DNA of 32,000 nucleotides from Wallemia ichthyophaga EXF-994 (lineage: Eukaryota; Fungi; Basidiomycota): positions 270,001 to 302,000 of the forward strand of contig NW_008806285.1 in assembly GCF_000400465.1 (NCBI RefSeq), in the 5' to 3' direction. The translations under genes were made by a program, and so were the position numbers. The notes under the pieces are model-generated. The model did not search any database, was not told the origin of the DNA, and saw only the letters and a program-made list of their open reading frames with translations. Positions 13,898 to 32,000 of this stretch are shown here, piece after piece; the first letter of the stretch is position 1, and each line of letters starts with the position of its first letter.

Positions 13898-15500
13898 ATG
13901 TCATTCGTATACGCGCTTATATTCCAAATCTACACGCTCAACGCTATTCTCTCGTCGTACAGAGCACTCAAGAAGAACAGCGAGCGTGATAAGCGTGTCC
14001 AGCTGAGTGAGCGCCGTCGACAAATATCCTCGTGGCTCCAAATATGGATATGCTGGGTGAGTGGGCTACTTTCTTATAACTGATCCACTTCCCGCTTAAC
14101 ATACTCCGCCTCAGTTCATCTGGCTCAAACTGGGCAACCTCGTCGACTACTTGCTCAGCTGGATCTGGTTCTATTGGCAGATAAAGACTTTCATTCTCCT
14201 CACTTTTATTCTCACTAGCAGACAATCTGCCAGCGCGCTTTTCATCGACGCGCTCAAACCAACGCTGATGCCCTACGAGTATTATGCGGATGGTTTTTTC
14301 GCGCTGCTTGAGGACACGCACGCGATTGGGATGTGGGTGCTGACTGATATCATATACCGTGGCGTTAGGGATAACTTAGCTGACGTGGGTGTTCTGAGAC
14401 ACTACCTGAATCTCGCACCGGCGACAACAACAGCACCAGAAGCAGAAGCAGGAGCACACCATCCACCCAATCCCAAGAAGAAGGTCGTGCGCAGGCCAAC
14501 AGGACCTATTATCCGCCAGCGCAAGAACATGATAGCCAATTCCCAAAAATCACAGAACACACAAAGCAAAACAGGGCGTCCGAGTGTCGTGCTTAGACGG
14601 CCGCAGTCTGCGAAAACACCTGAACTCACACCTGCACCCGCGCACAGCGGCAAAGAAGAGGACGCAGCGCTCATCAACACCAAACCTACTTTCATGAGTA
14701 CTCCCAAGGCCAAAGCGTTACATGCGAGTGGAGATAATGTTCTTCACGCACCTCACGCACCCGACACACTCCACTCTCCTTACATACCAGGCAGGCTTCC
14801 TCACACTCCGCCATTTGTGCGGCTGACGAGGTCGCAGACGCGTGGAAATGCAAATGCAGCAACAGCACCAGCACTAACAGCTACAAGCGGTGATAAGGGT
14901 GGTGATTCTATAAGCAGTAGTAGTAGTAGTAGTAGTAGTAGTGGCAGCGAGGAGGACACACCGCCAGCACCTCCTCACACCCATAGCATAGCCAACATGG
15001 ATAGGAAGCGCAACGCTTCCAGTGCCTCTCTTAAGAGTGCGAGCAGTGCAAACAGTGCGAACAGCGCCAAGAGCGCGCAGAGCAACGAGCAGCCGTCATA
15101 CACAGTCCTTCGACGCGCTGACCCGAGTTCGAAGACAAGTGGGAGTGGGAGTGGGAGTGACGGCCAGAACAGCGGCAGTGACAGTGACAGCTCGAATGAC
15201 AATGACAGCGACAGCTCCACAGAAAACACAAAGATGCTCGATCAAAACGAATTAGCCACAACGCACACCCGCACCTACTCTTCAACCGCCGAGAACAAAA
15301 AACTTACATCCTCAAATATACCACGCAAGAAACGCATTGTAACTTTGCGCAAACAAGTAAATACAAACGCCAAACCAAACACGAACACAAACACGGACGC
15401 ACAAACACAACCACACCCTCCACGCAGACAGGCAGCTACACGGGGTAGAGGACTGAGACGACCTCCTATACGCGGCAGAGGGCGCGGACGAGCCACTTGA
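13898..15500 (+). CDS. TB2/DP1/HVA22 (REEP-family) membrane-shaping protein with a long disordered C-tail
   Basis: Exon 13898..14056, intron 14057..14114, then the long ORF. LSSYRALKK...WLQIWICW|FIW...LSWIWFYWQIKTFILL...ASALFIDALKP resembles the HVA22/REEP hairpin domain. About 370 aa of S/T/N/K-rich tail follow. Confidence 0.72.
14915..14943. repeat. (AGT)n microsatellite encoding poly-Ser in the REEP-like tail
   Basis: AGCAGTAGTAGTAGTAGTAGTAGTAGTAGT gives SSSSSSSSSS. Confidence 0.9.
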
Positions 15501-20628: not shown

Positions 20629-21360
20629 TTACATGTATTGCGAGATCCATCTGAAGCCTTCACCGTAGCCTTGACGCATAACGACGGAGCACATGAAGAC
20701 TTCAATAGGACGAATGTCTTTAAGGGGTACCTTGCCCTTGCCGGTAGTTTGCCAGAGACCGAGAGACTGACGGAGTTCTTCTTCAGAGACAGCGCCAGGA
20801 GCGTCAATCTTGTTACCGAGAACGAGGAAAGGAACCCTAGAGAGTTCCTCGATGGAGAGCAGAGCGTCGAGCTCTATTCTAGTCTCGTTCATTCTCTCCA
20901 CGTCTTGACTGTCGACTAGGAAGACAACGCCGTCAACTTCAGGGAAGTAGTCCTTCCACAGTCTTCTCGCTTGTTGGTGACCGCCTAGATCGTAAGTGGT
21001 GAATTTAACAGCGCCAATAGCGAGTTCTTCCGAGGTTGGGTGCAAAGTCGGCTGGAGTGTTGCCAGTCTGTCGTTCTTAAGCATGTGGAGGAGTGTCTGT
21101 GAATTGGTGTGTTGGTTAGCAGATAGCTGGGGAGCGGCGGGGATCGACCCACAGTCTTTCCTGCATTATCCAAACCAAGGAACAAGATCTTGGCATTCTT
21201 GCTGGCGAGTCCTGAGCGGCGGCGGTGTGAGCTGTTTGTGTCGTGTGTTGTGATTGTGATTAACACACCTAAAGAAGCGAGTACGTCCCAGAACCAATCT
21301 AAAATCCACCTAATGTGTATCAATGTGCTGCTCTCTCGATGTGCTTCTTTCTCCCCACAT
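20629..21360 (-). CDS. SAR1: Small COPII GTPase Sar1
   Basis: [14 protein letters not shown]|[20 protein letters not shown]|[11 protein letters not shown]...[16 protein letters not shown]...NKID...[23 protein letters not shown]. Three introns; the first (21310..21358) splits the ATG. Confidence 0.97.
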
Positions 21361-22793: not shown

Positions 22794-23412
22794 TTAGACC
22801 AATTTCGTGAAGAGCTTTGGAGCAGCGCAGTCGTCGACGGCGTGCAAGAAGCTGTAAGGGGTGAGAGGGGTGTGTGCGTGCTGCGGTTTACTCACTGGAC
22901 TATAAATCGGGGAAATGTTATTGGTTAAGCATAACAGTTAAGGCAGATTACTTACGCCTGTAGAAAGAATCACTTAGATATCGTTGCTAGCCTATGAATC
23001 GCACTCACATTTCCTCAGCACAGTTCTCGCCTTCGAATCCTTTGCCTGCTTCGACTTTTTCGTTGCAGTGCTCGAAGTGGTGCTTCAAGTGAGCGACGTG
23101 GGAGTTGTTCTCACATTCTGAATAAGCGTCAGGAGTGCGGCGTACAGCAAGCAGATTCATTCACCTTCACGGATAGCTGGGTAGATCTGAGTGGCATGAG
23201 AAGGCTAAGCGTTGTGAGCCAGCAACACTCACATCTTCTGGCTCCTCTTCCTCCTCCTCTTCTTCCTCCTCTTCCTTGTCTTCAGATTCCTGTTGTGGCT
23301 CTTCCTGTGTCTCTTCCTGTGGCTGCTCCTGTGGCTGCTCCTCGCCCTCATCTGCGTACCCAACTGAGTAGACCGCGTCGACTGCTGAACTTAAATAATC
23401 TGCTAATCCCAT
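22794..23412 (-). CDS. QCR6: Cytochrome bc1 hinge subunit Qcr6
   Basis: Acidic N-terminus, then EPED|IYPAIRE|ECENN...LKHHFEHCNEKVEAGKGFEGENCAEEMLHFLHAVDDCAAPKLFTKLV*. Six exons, including 22-, 2- and 4-nt exons. Confidence 0.93.
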
Positions 23413-24731: not shown

Positions 24732-26633
24732 CTAAGCTGATTCCTTCTTCGATGTATACTCGCGGTGACCTGAAGCTTGCGAGTTTTCATCGCTCTCGAA
24801 TCTCTTATCAGAGTGATCGACATTGTCAGAATGCTCGATATTTTCCGGATTACCATAGATATCCATCTTGTTGGCCTCCATGACATCTCTCCTGGAATTG
24901 TAACCGGGTGGGACCCACTTCTCGCTTGCCCAGGCTGTCAAGCCCTTCGTGGAGTACATTATGTCCACATTCTCGAGCGATAAACCTGCGGTTTCGTAGA
25001 GGAAGAAGAAGACAAAGACTGACGCGAAGAGATTGCAGCCAGCGAAGATGTAACCGTAAGCGAAGCCAATGTCACCAGTGATGAATGGCGAAAAGAAGGA
25101 GATAAGGAAGTTCCACGTCCAGTTCGAAGCCGTCGCCAGCGATGCCTGTCTTGCTCTTGTTCTCGTTGGGAACGTCTCACCAGTGACAATCCAGCAAGCT
25201 GGACCCCAAGTAGTGGCGTAACTGGCAATGAACAAGCAAGCTGAGACAATCATGAGATCTCCCATACCTTCGTATTCGCTTGGAGGGCGACAAACACCGA
25301 CGGAGGCGAAAATAAGCAGCCAAATCTTTATAGCAGTTAGCAAAATGCAGTTACTCTCGGAGACAACTCACTGCTATGGAAAAGTTAGCATGATCTAGGA
25401 GAAAGATTTTCACTACTCACTTTGCCATAAACCTCCAATGTAAAGTGGTCTACGACGTCCATAGTGTTCTAGCACATAAAGACTGAAGAAGACGCAAACA
25501 AAGTTCACAACACCCATAATAATTTGTGTAATGTAAGAATCTTCGATACCAACCGACTGGAAGATAGTGGCACCGTAGTAGAAGAAGTAGTTGGCACCAG
25601 TCAGCTGTTGCAGACTTTGCATCATCATTCCAAGGAAGGTTCTGTAGGCCAATTTCTTCGAGCCAGGAGAGCCGACGAAACATTCAATCCACGACTGCCA
25701 GAATGGAGCGTCATTCTCCCTCTCCATGTTGATATTTGTTTCAATTTCGCGGTAGTCATGCTCAACAACAGCTCTATCATAGTCTGTCTTGATACCTCTA
25801 ATTCTTTCGAGCGCATTTCTTGCGTCGTCGGTTCTGTCGTTTTTCATGAGCCAACGTGGTGATTCTGAGATTATCAGCAAAACCCCGAGAAATCATCAAG
25901 CTACCCACCTGGAAACCGAGCGTGAAAGTGAGTGCATAACCAAGACCAACGATGATTCTCCAACTCGCGTCACTGTCTAGCTGGCGGGTACCGTAACAAA
26001 AGCAATATGCCAAAAGCATACCAAATGTAATGGCAAGTTGGTAGCAAGCAACCGCTGTACCTCTGAAAGAAGCTACGACGCACTCGGACATGTACATTGG
26101 TACCGCTGCTGATAAAGCACCAACACCCAGACCAGCTATCAGTCTACCGACTGCGAATTGCTGCCACACTTCAAATGTAGTGATCTGTACGAGGAATCCA
26201 ATACTGACTACGATACACTCGATCGTCATGGCCCATCTTCTCCCTAAAAAGTCCGCGAGAGGAGCACCAAGAAGAGCACCACCAAAGGTACCGATCGACA
26301 AAAGACCAACGATAAGACCCTCTCTGACTCGGGAAAACTCGTAAGTCTCGCAGTTCATACCATTAGCATCACATCCCTCTTGAATGTCCGAAAATCGCTC
26401 GAGGAAGTCCCTCATGAGAAGCATGTCTGATATCATACCAATATCATAACTTAGTGCGCTGTGAGCGGGGAGGTCTCGTAATGACATTCTGTACTCACCC
26501 AAAAACCATACCTCCAACGGAGCTGCAGGTCTCAGTTAGTGGTGTTTTGCGGAGATGCGGGGCCCTACGATAGTGCTGCTATGAAAATTGTCACAAGCCC
26601 TAGCGGCTGTCCATGTACTTTAAAATTAAACAT
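24732..26633 (-). CDS. MFS sugar porter (hexose transporter), array copy 1
   Basis: MFNFKVHGQPLGLV...GGMVFGYDIGMISD, ADFLGRR, GRLIAGLGVG..SAAVPMYMSE, PESPRW, MMQSLQQLTGANYFFYYG, GRRRPL, WGPACW..TGETFP, SNWTWNFLI, YETAGLSLE. Five introns, one pair flanking a 2-nt exon. Confidence 0.96.
24991..25186. repeat. 196-bp direct repeat identical to 27818..28013
   Basis: GTTTCGTAGAGGAAG...CTCACCAGTGA is identical in copies 1 and 2, with divergent flanks. Confidence 0.9.
25555..25914. repeat. 360-bp direct repeat identical to 28383..28742 (includes a whole intron)
   Basis: Read base by base, GACTGGAAGATAGTGG...CTACCCACCTGGAA, constant offset 2828. Overlapping antisense ORFs in the track have identical translations over the tract. 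Confidence 0.92.
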
Positions 26634-26833
26634 TGTGGTTGTAGTTCGAGATGAAAGGGCAGCTCGGATTGACTTTACAAGTATGGTATATGAATGCGTA
26701 CCTGATGGTCATGTGCACGTCATACGGTGCGCATACGGAACTCTTCCTTGTTTGATGATCACCGGGGGTGACTCAATGCGGATAAAATCCCCAAGAATGC
26801 TAAGGGAAGAGCTTCTTCGTATCTCATAATCTG

Positions 26834-27298
26834 GTCTAGCTGCATTATCGAGAATGCTAAACGGGGTATTGCGGGAATTATGCATGCATGGCGGCTATAA
26901 TTTCAATACTTGTCAAAAATAAAAACAAAGACGCTAAACTTCCATCTGAGTGTCTTCAGGTACGCTGTTGTTTCAGTAAGTTGTAAAAGACTGACACCGG
27001 AACACTTCCGTATACACAAATCTTACAATGTCATCATCCTACTTTTTACTTTTTGTCCGTTATCATACGACCGCATAATGGCACCCCTTTCGTCAAGAAA
27101 CCGAAGCGTGCTGGCACATCGGAAGCCTCCGACATGGCTGATCACGTCTCTTGATCTAATTTAAAGGATCATGGGAACTCTGGGCTGACTGAGGATATTT
27201 CTAGATGCGTTCTTATCATACTACAAGTATATATTGCTGAGATGTCTTTTTTTCAGTAACTCATTTACAACACTACCATACTCAATATGCAAGATCTT
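26834..27298 (+). pseudogene. Decayed duplicate of the TBCC 3' half and its 3' flank (relic 1)
   Basis: Colinear matches to 24030..24467: GTCTAGCTGC, TGTC(A/T)TCAGGT, GACTGACAC, an identical 18-mer TTCCGTATACACAAATCT (24198 vs 27006), TTTCGTCAAG and ATATGCAAGATCTT (24454 vs 27285). The intron acceptor AG is lost and the frame is disrupted. Confidence 0.85.
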
Positions 27299-27606
27299 CA
27301 TACAAAAACAGATGATGCAAACTCTCGCTACTAAGGGATATCACTGACTGCAATCACGATCTCGCCCCAACTGCAAGCCCCGCCCAGTCACATATCTAAG
27401 TCGGCTAAAGTTTAAAGTAAATTTATTCGAAAAATTTGATAATACAGGCATCATTTTGATGACATTAGGAAGCCTTTAGCAATTCGTGATCACCAGTTAT
27501 GGATAGATTAGTAGGTAACTTGAAATATTGGAGAGCTGTCCTTTGCATCCGGCAGAAATGAAAAAATTGATGAAAAGTGAGATGAAGTCTTCCATGCAGC
27601 TTACAT

Positions 27607-29523
27607 TTAAGCTTTGTTTCCTGCATCGTCGTTATTTCCTGATGATTGAGAGAATCTGTCACCGTCAGAGTGATCGAACGTGTACTTTTCAGCGTTCGAA
27701 GACTCCAAAGCATCTCCCCTTCGAGACATTCCTGGTGGAATCCATTTTTCTGAGCCCCAAGCTGTCAAACCTTTCGTTGAATACATCTCATTGACGGCCT
27801 CCAAAGACAAATCAGCAGTTTCGTAGAGGAAGAAGAAGACAAAGACTGACGCGAAGAGATTGCAGCCAGCGAAGATGTAACCGTAAGCGAAGCCAATGTC
27901 ACCAGTGATGAATGGCGAAAAGAAGGAGATAAGGAAGTTCCACGTCCAGTTCGAAGCCGTCGCCAGCGATGCCTGTCTTGCTCTTGTTCTCGTTGGGAAC
28001 GTCTCACCAGTGATAATCCAACACCCTGGTCCCCACGTTGCGGCATAGCTGGCAATAAACAGACAAGCTGAGACAATCATGAGATCTCCCATTCCATCGT
28101 ACTCCGCTGGAGGACGTGCAACCCCTACTGAAGCAAAAACAAGCAACCAAATCTGAGACAAAATTAGCAACGATTTTATCGAAATTTCTCTTACTCACAC
28201 CTGTGAAAGAGTCATTAAGGGTTCAAGAGGAAGATTTCCGCTACTCACTTTGCCATAAACCACCGATGTAAAGTGGTTTACGACGACCAAAGTGCTCCAA
28301 GATGTAAAGACTAGCAAAAACGCAAACGAAGTTCACGACCCCGAGAATTATTTGGGTAATGTAAGAGTCATCGATACCGACAGACTGGAAGATAGTGGCA
28401 CCGTAGTAGAAGAAGTAGTTGGCACCAGTCAGCTGTTGCAGACTTTGCATCATCATTCCAAGGAAGGTTCTGTAGGCCAATTTCTTCGAGCCAGGAGAGC
28501 CGACGAAACATTCAATCCACGACTGCCAGAATGGAGCGTCATTCTCCCTCTCCATGTTGATATTTGTTTCAATTTCGCGGTAGTCATGCTCAACAACAGC
28601 TCTATCATAGTCTGTCTTGATACCTCTAATTCTTTCGAGCGCATTTCTTGCGTCGTCGGTTCTGTCGTTTTTCATGAGCCAACGTGGTGATTCTGAGATT
28701 ATCAGCAAAACCCCGAGAAATCATCAAGCTACCCACCTGGAAGGAACCAAATGCCAATTCCAAGGGTGAATGTAAACGCAAAACCGAGACCGATGATGAT
28801 TCTCCAACTAGCGTCGCTATCTAATTGACGGGTACCAATACAGAAACAGTATGAAAGCAAGACACCTAAGGTGATTGCGAGCTGGTAGCAAGCGACAGCC
28901 GCACCTGTTCATAACGTTAGAGCAAAATTTTCTTCAAAGGGCACACCTACCTCTGAAAGACGCTACGACGCACTCGGACATGTACATTGGTACCGCTGCT
29001 GATAAAGCACCAACACCCAGACCAGCTATCAGTCTACCAACCGCGAGTTGCTGCCAGACAGTGAAGGTGGTTATCTGTATGAGGAATCCAATGCTGACGA
29101 CGATACACTCAATTGTCATAGCCCATCTTCTGCCGAGGTAATCTGCAATAGGAGCACCAAAGATAGCACCGGCAAGGGTACCGATGGAGAGAAGACCGAC
29201 GATAAGGCCTTCTCTGACTCTGGATAATTCATAGTTGCTACAGTTCATACCGTTGGAGTCACATCCTTCACGGATGTCTGAAAAACGCTCTAGGAAATCC
29301 CTCATGAGAAGCATGTCTGAGATCATACCGGTATCATATCTGGAGTGAATGTTAACGGCGGCATAACGCAGATTCAGTCTATACACACCCAAAGATACCT
29401 CCTCCGACAGATCTATGGGTCTTGATCAGTTGCAAAGTTCGGGGATGCGGGGACTTACGATAATAACGCAATGGAGATTGTCATAAGCCCCACCGGCTGA
29501 CCCTTTATTTCGAAATTGATCAT
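27607..29523 (-). CDS. MFS sugar porter (hexose transporter), array copy 2
   Basis: MINFEIKGQPVGLM...GGGIFGYDTGMISD and the same sugar-porter motifs as copy 1. Six introns, including 28905..28950, which copy 1 lacks. Confidence 0.96.
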
Positions 29524-29897
29524 AGTGGTTGTAATTAGAGGCAAGATTAGGCTACTCGAGCTTTACATAAGTGCGAATGGGCACGGTCGAACATTACGAC
29601 GAGCTGCATGATGAATTTGGTACCTGACTCTTGTCATGTGCAAGCAATACGAAGATAATCCAAATTCAATGGCAAAAAAAAGCCTGGATATAGACTGGTG
29701 CTCATTGATGGGTCGGCAGCCGTTTCCGTAACTACACACTCGCTCTCCAGCTGCCATAACCACAATTTTCACCGGAGTATACTATTTTCCGACCGCGTGT
29801 CTGAAAATCCATTCCTCAATATTTTTAACCACGCTACCAGCCTCGCGCTTATTAAAGCGAGGCCCATATGGTGCGTCGTTGTCACAAAAAGCTTAAA

Positions 29898-30082
29898 GAA
29901 TGACAGCGGAGAGGTTCCGTCTATACCATCACATAACATGACTTGTTTACTATCCATTATCTAAACAGTCATCACGTTTTCCTGAACTCATACTTTCATC
30001 AACTGTCGGTCAAGTATACCAAAGCTGCTGTCTTACCAATGGTGTCTGACCTCAACGATGGTGTCTTCCTATTCAAATATCC
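29898..30082 (+). pseudogene. Decayed duplicate of the last TBCC exon (relic 2)
   Basis: GAATGAC...GTTCCGT matches the TBCC intron/exon junction. Residual translations SHNMTCLLSI (vs SHNVTIALSI) and VKYTKAAVLPMVSDLNDGV (vs VKHPKATNIPVVSDFDDPV). Confidence 0.7.
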
Positions 30083-30656
30083 TACTTTACATATCTGCTG
30101 TTCCCTCAGCATTGCTGCTCATCCCATCTTTAACAGACAAGCATCTCTTCAATCGTGATGATGATTCGGAAATATGAGACAACCATGAGCTGTCACAACG
30201 AGCATGCATTCATGAGATGGCATGCATTCCCGAAATGTATTCTTAGTAGCTACTCCACAAAGAACAGTGATCACCGATGATACGCTCTCTCTACGCGCTC
30301 ATCCCGAAATCCACAATCACTATATCAATTTCACGCCATCTACAACGCACACAAATTCACAATCAAAATTCGAAAAGGGAGAATCAATGTGAACGTTACA
30401 GTGACACTCTTTCTGCACGATCATTTCAAAATCCGCAATCGCCATACCAATGTCACGCAATCTCAATGCACACATTCTTGGGAAGAAGCAAATTCATTTG
30501 AGAGCACAGGTATTATTTTATTTGCGCAAGAATTATCTAAGCAAGTCATAGTAAGCAATTAGTAAAATGAGAGCAAACCTTGGAAAGTTCTATGTCCTAT
30601 AGAAGCGAAAAAGCAAATTAAAAAAGAGAGGAGGAATATAAGACTTCCTGAAAATC

Positions 30657-32000
30657 TTAAGCCTTCTTGGCTGCGTCTTCGTGCTGATCTGAAGCTTGAG
30701 AGAACCTCTCACCATCCTCAAATCTCTTGTCGACGTTCTCGCCATTCTCATCATGATATGTATCAAGCTTGGCCGACTCCATGACATCCCTCCTATTTTC
30801 ATAGCCAGGAGGTGTCCAAGCTCTGCTCTTCCATGGCTTCAAGCCATCGGTTGAGTACATTTCGTCTACTGCCTCAAGAGATAAACCGGCAGTCTCGTAG
30901 AGGAAGAAGTATACGAAGACTGACGCAAATAAGTTACAGCCAGCGAAGACGTAACCATAGGCGAAGCCAATGTCACCAGTGATGAATGGTGAGAAGAACC
31001 CGATGAGGAAGTTCCATACCCAGTTTGATGCGGTGGCAATGGATGCTTGTCTGGCTCTGGTTCTCATTGGGAACGTTTCACCAGTGATAATCCAGCAGGC
31101 TGGACCCCAAGTAGTTGCGTAACTGGCAATGAACAAGCAAGCTGAGACAATCATGAGATTACCCATGCCCTCGTTCTGATCTGGTGGGCGAGCAACACCG
31201 ACGGAGGCAAAAATGAAGAGCCAAATCTAAAGAGAGATTAGCAATGGCTAATGGTATCTATAAACTACTCACGGCTGTAGAAAAGTCAGTAATATTCAGG
31301 GAGGAAGATTTTCATGACTTACATTGCCAAAGACCACCCCAGAAGAGAGGACGACGACGTCCAAAGTTCTCTAAGACGTAAAGTGATGCGAATGTGCAAA
31401 CGAAGTTGACGGCACCGAGAATGATTTGTGTGATGAACGAATCTGAGAGACCGACCGATTGGAAGATAGTGGCACCGTAGTAGAAGAAGTAGTTGGCACC
31501 AGTCAGCTGTTGCAGACTTTGCATCATCATACCAAGAAGCGTTCTGTAGACCAACTTCTTCGAGCCATGGTGACCAATGAAACACTCCACCCAGGACTGC
31601 CAGAATGGAGACTCAACTTGTCTTTCAATTTCAATACGGCCAGAAATCTCTAGGAAGTCGTGCTCGACAACGGTTCTTTCAAAGTCTGTCTCAGCACCTC
31701 TAATTCTCTCGAGCGCATGTCTTGCCTGTTCAGGCTTGTTGTTCTTCATCAACCAACGGGGAGATTCTAGCGCATCGTTAGTAAGGAAGGGTTGAAAACA
31801 TAAGTATTCACCTGGTAAGAGCCAGATACCACAACCGAGAGTGCAAGTTAACACGAAACCGAGACCGATAATGATTCTCCAACTCGCGGCGCTCTCTAAT
31901 TGACGAGTACCAATGCAGAAGCAGTATGACAGTAGAATACCGAAGGTGATTGCCAGTTGGTAACAAGCGACAGCCGTACCTGTTAAATGTGGTAAGATGA
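30657..32000 (-). CDS. MFS sugar porter (hexose transporter), array copy 3, 5' part outside the window
   Basis: AVACYQLAITFG, PESPRW, QQLTGANYFFYYG, GRRRPL, WGPACWIITGETFP, SNWVWNFLIGFFSPFI and YETAGLSLE. More diverged from copies 1 and 2. Confidence 0.95.

Follow-up and report, generated by a model that had tools for sequence, protein, structure and literature searches.

Can two consecutive internal exons of 2 and 4 nucleotides (nt) be genuine parts of a gene? The question is posed by QCR6, the gene for the hinge protein (subunit 6) of the cytochrome bc1 complex, on the minus strand of a 32,000-nt stretch of Wallemia ichthyophaga EXF-994 DNA (contig NW_008806285.1, positions 270,001 to 302,000; referred to as the window). 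W. ichthyophaga is a halophilic basidiomycete of the class Wallemiomycetes and, to our knowledge, the most halophilic fungus known. An initial annotation, made from the letters of the window without database searches, had proposed that three short introns in this gene enclose back-to-back micro-exons that together hold six bases. Because the pair is conserved, the encoded protein fits its family, and the mRNA of an orthologue contains the pair, we consider constitutive inclusion of both micro-exons in Wallemia QCR6 very likely.

Anatomy of QCR6 and fit of the predicted protein

Rereading the minus strand with a script showed that the junction strings and coordinates proposed for the micro-exons were right to the base. 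The gene model, with slashes at exon boundaries, is as follows.

22794..23412, minus strand: coding region of QCR6 (hinge protein, subunit 6 of the cytochrome bc1 complex), from the ATG at 23412 to the TAA at 22794, split into six exons by five introns
23412-23233, minus strand: exon 1, 180 nt, N terminus and acidic Glu/Asp-rich region, ending ...PED
23232-23187, minus strand: intron 1, 46 nt, GTGAGT..CTCAG, phase 0, after PED
23186-23165, minus strand: exon 2, 22 nt, IYPAIRE-E
23164-23118, minus strand: intron 2, 47 nt, GTGAAT..TTCAG, phase 1, in REE/C
23117-23009, minus strand: exon 3, 109 nt, covering helix 1 and the first part of helix 2, with GAG GAA AT (GAGGAAAT) at its end
23008-22958, minus strand: intron 3, 51 nt, GTGAGT..CTACAG, phase 2, in the Met codon
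22957-22956, minus strand: putative micro-exon 1, 2 nt, GC, in the context CTACAG/GC/GTAAGT
22955-22900, minus strand: intron 4, 56 nt, GTAAGT..TTATAG, phase 1, in the Leu codon
22899-22896, minus strand: putative micro-exon 2, 4 nt, TCCA, in the context TTATAG/TCCA/GTGAGT
22895-22852, minus strand: intron 5, 44 nt, GTGAGT..TTACAG, phase 2, in the His codon
22851-22794, minus strand: last exon, 58 nt, TTACAG/CTTCTTGCAC, reading C TTC TTG CAC ... FLHAVDDCAAPKLFTKLV, stop TAA

A canonical YAG acceptor and a GTRAGY donor stand on both sides of each micro-exon, and the flanking introns measure 51, 56, and 44 nt; the mean intron length in the W. ichthyophaga genome is 61 bp (PMC3849046). When the 157-nt span 23008-22852 was shuffled, none of 200,000 shuffles gave two AG/N/GTRAGY units summing to 6 nt and separating three sub-introns of at least 40 nt each. 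The micro-exon arrangement is more than chance.

Joined together, all exons amount to 375 nt and encode a 124-amino-acid protein ending ...ENCAEEMLHFLHAVDDCAAPKLFTKLV. Across the micro-exons the predicted mRNA reads GAG GAA ATG CTC CAC TTC (protein ...CAEEMLHFLHAVDDC...), and the mRNA strings predicted for this form are GAGGAAATGCTCCACTTCTTG, GAAATGCTCCACTTC, and GCTGAGGAAATGCTCCACTTCTTGCACGCC. Leaving out both micro-exons gives an in-frame product of 122 amino acids (EEIFLH; predicted mRNA string GCTGAGGAAATCTTCTTGCACGCC), and either micro-exon by itself shifts the frame. Translation of these models confirmed what had been claimed for them, namely, that the double skip costs two residues and keeps the frame and that single inclusion does not.

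The identification of the gene as QCR6 was upheld by the Pfam UCR_hinge family (PF02320), which the 124-residue protein matches at 86.3 bits against a cutoff of 27.2 over profile positions 1 to 64 of 65. The skipped model scores ∼11 bits less (75.5), and a model that retains intron 5 scores 61. The top database relatives of the protein are W. ichthyophaga entries that agree with it completely on either side of the disputed site, followed by W. mellicola, which places the window in W. ichthyophaga. An acidic, E/D-rich stretch (residues 21 to 60) precedes a two-helix hairpin with paired cysteines, which brace the hairpin in UCR_hinge proteins. In the micro-exon model the cysteines are spaced C-ENNSHVAHLKHHFEH-C (C-x15-C) and, in helix 2, C-AEEMLHFLHAVDD-C (C-x13-C); in the skipped model the helix 2 spacing falls from 13 residues to 11 (C-x11-C), a two-residue deletion that would put these cysteines out of register. 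The protein encoded with both micro-exons matched 26 distinct Protein Data Bank sequences (best E = 1.2e-9). Against solved bc1 subunit 6 chains it scored 41.7 bits with helix 2 aligned without a gap, compared with 33.4 bits and a 2-residue gap exactly at the micro-exon site for the skipped model. The gap-free alignment with the hinge family proposed at the outset was thus confirmed, with the Pfam model and mammalian chains as the reference. Enumeration of splice paths further identified the combination of the 2-nt and 4-nt exons as the only canonical path that restores C-x13-C with strong donors.

Conservation of the pair and transcripts of orthologues

In the QCR6 locus of Wallemia mellicola (L001), exon lengths are 168, 22, 109, 2, 4, and 58 nt, and the micro-exons GC and TCCA, together with the internal donors and acceptors, are as in W. 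ichthyophaga. Exons of the two species are 72 to 95% identical (exon 2, 95.5%). The interiors of all five introns are 46 to 60% identical, and random sequence passed through the same aligner gave 47.5 ± 4.4%. The GC and TCCA units have therefore been kept while intron interiors drifted, and nothing would preserve such units inside one 157-nt intron. A block in intron 4, TTAACCAAT / CTAACCAAT, is common to both species and is a candidate branch site; in a motif scan, introns 4 and 5 of each species showed YTNAY motifs at plausible distances, as did W. mellicola intron 3. Three Logan contigs (L002 to L004) come from other W. ichthyophaga strains and are identical in the micro-exon region, so that they add no divergence. 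In the acidic N-terminal region, these same contigs have one more 15-nt, in-frame repeat unit (ETQEE) than the window at positions ∼23300 to 23330, a length polymorphism of the Glu-rich tail.

Beyond Wallemia, we searched QCR6 genomic loci for exact canonical splice paths encoding the annotated protein or a corrected, transcript-like one. Five Agaricomycete loci proved to have three introns at the Wallemia positions and phases (X{2}X{1}H{2}), with the following exon ends and micro-exons.

Tulasnella sp. (L008): upstream exon end GAGGAATT; 2-nt exon AT; 4-nt exon TCCA; downstream CATGATG
Pleurotus ostreatus (PC15, L009): upstream exon end GAAGAAAT; 2-nt exon GT; 4-nt exon TCCA; downstream CATGATG
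Lentinula raphanica (L005): upstream exon end GAGGAAAT; 2-nt exon GT; 4-nt exon TCCA; downstream CATGATG
L. edodes (L016): upstream exon end GAAGAAAT; 2-nt exon GT; 4-nt exon TCCA; downstream CATGATG
Laccaria amethystina (L020): upstream exon end GAAGAGCT; 2-nt exon AT; 4-nt exon TCCA; downstream CATGATG

The comparison of intron positions among fungal QCR6 genes, which had been suggested as a check, thus returned the same 2- plus 4-nt pair in W. mellicola and five Agaricomycetes. In all seven examined genomes with the pair the 4-nt exon is TCCA, and the 2-nt exon varies among GC, GT, and AT. The deposited L. edodes protein (GCA_028011485.1, P0016) itself requires the GT and TCCA exons, and about ten other Agaricomycete QCR6 models carry EEMFH or EELFH.

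Transcripts of relatives contain the six bases. Two Logan contigs from independent RNA sequencing (RNA-seq) runs (L018, SRR19536636; L019, SRR7979663) carry an uninterrupted QCR6 reading frame and share a neighboring F-box gene with L. amethystina, with best blocks 92 to 95% identical and others 83 to 88%. Both read GAAGAGCT-ATTCCA-CATGATG, in which exactly six bases, equal to the genomic AT plus TCCA, separate the blocks of the flanking exons. A further RNA-seq contig (L010) reads GAGGAAATGTTCCACATGATG. Among the relatives in the census described below, all 20 of 20 open reading frames from metatranscriptome and RNA-seq contigs show the complete spacing, and the site reads LFH, FYH, or MFH. 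The callers used on those contigs do not model introns, and a complete hinge frame there should therefore mean spliced RNA.

Alternative readings, probable splicing mechanism, and proposed intron history

Several observations weigh against constitutive inclusion of both micro-exons, some from our searches and others from what the alternatives explain. No Wallemia transcript or peptide was present in the searched collections, and the exact 124-residue protein was absent from ∼15 billion sequences. A gapped DNA pattern for every possible isoform junction in both Wallemia species had no match in metagenome contigs, and a protein-guided metagenome scan found no relatives. By the motif scan, W. ichthyophaga intron 3 is without YTNAY at the usual distance and has only CTAAG near its 3′ end. 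Sequential splicing and intron definition, discussed below, rest on general knowledge of spliceosome footprints. Illumina RNA-seq of W. ichthyophaga at 10% and 30% NaCl has been reported (PMC3849046). A further adverse point is that the deposited RefSeq model of the type strain (XP_009268859.1/J056_000956, 122 amino acids, both ends identical to the window protein) is the skipped form and treats the whole 157-nt span as one ordinary intron, with good outer splice sites, the frame intact, and a Pfam score still past the threshold. However, the reference gene set comes from ab initio prediction by GeneMark-ES (PMC3849046), so this model is not transcript evidence. An intron of 157 nt would be ∼2.6 times the genome mean, and it would leave unexplained two AG/N/GTRAGY units that are base-identical in W. 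mellicola amid an otherwise randomized span. Nor can it account for the same units in five Agaricomycetes, and it shortens by two residues a C-x13-C helix that is otherwise fixed. The equivalent skipped Agaricomycete models (48 of the 102 genome-derived models surveyed below) are contradicted by the 20 transcript-derived proteins. A single intron is accordingly very improbable. The case is somewhat better, though still unlikely, that both forms are made, with the micro-exon form predominating and the double skip a minor or regulated isoform two residues shorter: double skipping keeps the frame between strong outer sites, which also tells against strictly constitutive inclusion, and alternative splicing is reported for 15% of W. 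ichthyophaga genes. Yet just one exon-skipping event was detected genome-wide (PMC3849046), the short form appears in 0 of 20 transcript-derived relatives, and, judging by the structure alignments, it would break the helix register between the paired cysteines.

Listing every canonical in-frame path in both Wallemia species left one alternative common to the two, a single 6-nt exon, GCGTAA (22957-22952), spliced from a GTAATC donor (predicted mRNA string GAGGAAATGCGTAACTTCTTG). That it follows a canonical GT-AG path in both species and yields a protein of family length (EEMRNFLH) also counts against the micro-exon pair, and its donor is the one used by the 140-residue models from population genomes (TIA84550.1 and others). 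The donors concerned (GTAATC and GTAACA) nevertheless lack G at +5, while the adjacent GTAAGT is optimal; the conserved TAG/TCCA/GTRAG unit is left unexplained; the Laccaria cDNA has AT plus TCCA rather than the analogous 6-nt exon ATGTAA; and Arg-Asn mismatches the x[FYL]H of all transcripts. We regard this path as scarcely credible. Least credible of all, with a probability close to nil, is that the longer or noncanonical models are right as deposited in GenBank and RefSeq, either the 140-residue W. ichthyophaga form (EEMRNPVSKPQHAHTPLTPYSFLH, with intron 5 left in) or EEIHSFLH in W. mellicola. The former inserts 16 residues into helix 2, and a model that retains intron 5 reaches only 61 bits with Pfam; for the latter there is no canonical GT-AG or GC-AG splice path.

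Under the preferred reading, with both micro-exons included, three short spliceosomal introns (51, 56, and 44 nt), each independent of the others, would split QCR6 helix 2 and leave the 2-nt GC and 4-nt TCCA exons, and constitutive removal of all three would yield the 124-residue protein with C-x13-C spacing. Fungi whose introns are short generally pair their splice sites across introns, a mode in which exon length is not limiting. Such intron definition is most likely here as well, because every one of the three introns combines a strong GTRAGT donor of its own with a YAG acceptor and a length near the genome mean. Only 2 or 4 nt separate each internal acceptor AG from the GT of the donor that follows, and the factors that recognize them would occupy overlapping nucleotides; neighboring introns would therefore be handled one after another and never simultaneously. 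The strict intron definition and ordered splicing proposed initially are thus reasonable expectations. This geometry appears to imply mutual exclusion of neighboring introns only, not a fixed order, and any removal order of the three is chemically possible.

Comparison across basidiomycetes suggests how the cluster arose. In Meredithblackwellia (Pucciniomycotina), a single intron (CTTT/GT...CAG/TCCAC) coincides exactly with Wallemia intron 4 in position, and because it stands there alone, intron 4 is probably the oldest of the three. Two examined Tremellomycetes, Kwoniella and Naematelia, have no intron in the micro-exon stretch. We infer that introns 3 and 5 were gained before Wallemiomycetes and Agaricomycetes separated and that Tremellomycetes lost all three; the split of Wallemiomycetes from the Agaricomycotina is placed at ∼250 million years (PMC3849046). 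Taken as a whole, the scenario of a cluster that predates the Wallemiomycetes/Agaricomycetes split, formed by gain of one intron 2 nt upstream and another 4 nt downstream of an older one that survives alone in Pucciniomycotina, and processable only by strictly sequential spliceosome assembly, is possible but tentative, and we would sooner bet against it than for it. If true, it would provide a conserved natural system in which to test how small an exon can be under intron definition. The two upstream introns of the gene have their own distributions: the phase-0 intron after PED (intron 1) occurs at every one of the nine basidiomycete loci mapped, and the phase-1 intron in REE/C (intron 2) is present in Wallemia and Meredithblackwellia (L007) and absent from the Agaricomycete and Tremellomycete loci mapped.

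Public gene models, further candidates, and known systems

None of the public Wallemia QCR6 models found uses the micro-exons. Besides the skipped RefSeq model, the population-genome models (TIA84550.1 and others, 140 amino acids) take a weak donor four bases downstream and then read through intron 5, and the W. mellicola model XP_006959373.1 reads EEIHSFLH, with the final bases of intron 5 taken as coding. No canonical GT-AG or GC-AG path yields the deposited proteins of W. mellicola L001 (EEIHSFLH), L. raphanica L005 (EEMIHMMHC), or P. ostreatus PC15 L009 (EEMCHMMHC); in these three loci the modelers kept the right length by means of noncanonical junctions.

We took a census of models among the top 120 relatives plus three further W. 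ichthyophaga models. At the micro-exon site, 85 of 102 genome-derived models (∼83%) differ from the form seen in transcripts: 48 lack two residues, 26 contain other errors (an intron left in, read-through, or truncation), and 11 have the right length with invented residues. Agreement with the transcript form was found in 17 models, six of which come from lineages without these introns. Ten corrected QCR6 proteins (P. ostreatus, L. raphanica, Tulasnella, W. mellicola, Psilocybe, Armillaria, Moniliophthora, Amanita, Wolfiporia, and Laccaria) were looked up exactly, and none occurs in a collection of ∼15 billion sequences. The assertion that 2-nt exons are usually misannotated therefore holds well at this site, for all public Wallemia models found and for most genome-derived relatives.

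These results would correct the sequence of a respiratory-chain subunit, whose RefSeq model is without two residues of a disulfide-braced helix and whose population-genome models carry a spurious 16-residue insert. They also expose a systematic annotation trap at one site, the errors of which are inherited by alignments, domain-evolution counts, and structure predictions of the UCR_hinge family, and the Wallemia ab initio gene set may hold many similar ones. Tandem 2-nt and 4-nt exons across fungal classes are, in addition, a natural substrate for asking how close 3′ and 5′ splice sites can lie and in what order introns are removed.

The window contains further candidates. Three tandem paralogous sugar-transporter genes of the major facilitator superfamily, all on the minus strand, have a candidate 2-nt exon at the same codon, in the shared context CAAx/GTRAGT..YAG/NN/GTGAGT..AG/ATTTGG.

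31274-31273, minus strand: candidate 2-nt exon CC
28200-28199, minus strand: candidate 2-nt exon GT
25373-25372, minus strand: candidate 2-nt exon CA

Joined, the junctions read GLWQ-S/S/T-IWL (one of S, S, and T per gene; predicted junction string, for example, ...TGGCAATCCATTTGG), and without the two bases the frame shifts. The joined peptide of the first copy aligns with solved sugar transporters without a gap at the point of the 2-nt exon. Eight occurrences of AG-N2-GTRAGY were seen on the minus strand of the window, against ∼2 expected from base frequencies. Because three sugar-transporter paralogs each need a 2-nt exon and the motif exceeds expectation, 2-nt exons seem to be a recurring feature of the W. 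ichthyophaga genome.

Two other features of the window are recorded here. The sugar-transporter unit (∼24855 to 31984) consists of three tandem copies spaced ∼2.83 and 3.07 kb from start to start and 65 to 90% identical to one another; a stretch of ∼70 nt (ATGATGATGCAAAGTCTGCAACAGCTGACTGGTGCCAACTACTTCTTCTACTACGGTGCCACTATCTTCCA) is identical in all three, synonymous sites included, with differing flanks, which could reflect gene conversion or strong constraint. Other YAG/N(1-4)/GTRAGY units, each a candidate micro-exon, are as follows.

17698, 10935, and 9293, minus strand: candidate 1-nt exons
14631-14630 and 11580-11579, minus strand: candidate 2-nt exons
24029-24027, minus strand: candidate 3-nt exon
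13275-13272, minus strand: candidate 4-nt exon
20989-20991 and 14003-14006, plus strand: candidate micro-exons

One related system is that of Coprinopsis cinerea, which belongs to the same fungal subphylum and likewise has tiny internal exons between short introns. The study of its long-read transcripts describes 57 two-nucleotide exons, distributed over 50 genes, along with 13 that are a single nucleotide long, and states that missing such exons breaks gene models (PMC12230235). Wallemia belongs to a different class, and the Coprinopsis exons are known from long reads. The initial view that 2-nt exons are rare is accordingly correct per gene but does not apply to the class, which is established by the 57 Coprinopsis cases (PMC12230235) and to which the window adds three more candidates. 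In the main text of that article, QCR6 is not named and no back-to-back pair is described. A search of the literature on Wallemia and basidiomycete micro-exons and on stwintrons likewise found no description of this QCR6 pair or of its conservation across classes.

Stwintrons and recursive splicing resemble QCR6 as modeled here in that several splicing reactions would take place in succession on one short stretch, but their nested or consecutive introns have no exonic bases between them, and in a stwintron the internal intron breaks up the donor, branch site, or acceptor of the external one. We rejected a stwintron reading of the cluster, since the three introns each have a donor and an acceptor of their own, none interrupts a splice signal of another, and six bases are retained in the orthologue mRNA; recursive splicing at zero-length exons was rejected because 2 and 4 bases are retained between AG and GT.

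Plant examples include 1-nt exons in APC11 and VPS55, which are conserved and absent from reference annotations, and an adjacent pair of 5 nt and 12 nt validated in rice (PMC8831610). Like the QCR6 pair as modeled here, the APC11 and VPS55 exons are constitutive, long conserved, furnished with strong GTRAGT donors, and missed by nearly all annotations, and the plant tiny exons have been lost together with their flanking introns in some lineages; they differ in having longer introns, and the rice pair totals 17 nt compared with 6 nt in QCR6 (PMC8831610). Another close match is the L. edodes orthologue (P0016), whose deposited model already contains the same 2- plus 4-nt exons at the same codon phases as in Wallemia; its 2-nt exon is GT instead of GC, and its introns are longer (78 to 231 nt). 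The QCR6 pair belongs to the established class of ultra-short exons, and its conservation is deeper than any we found published.

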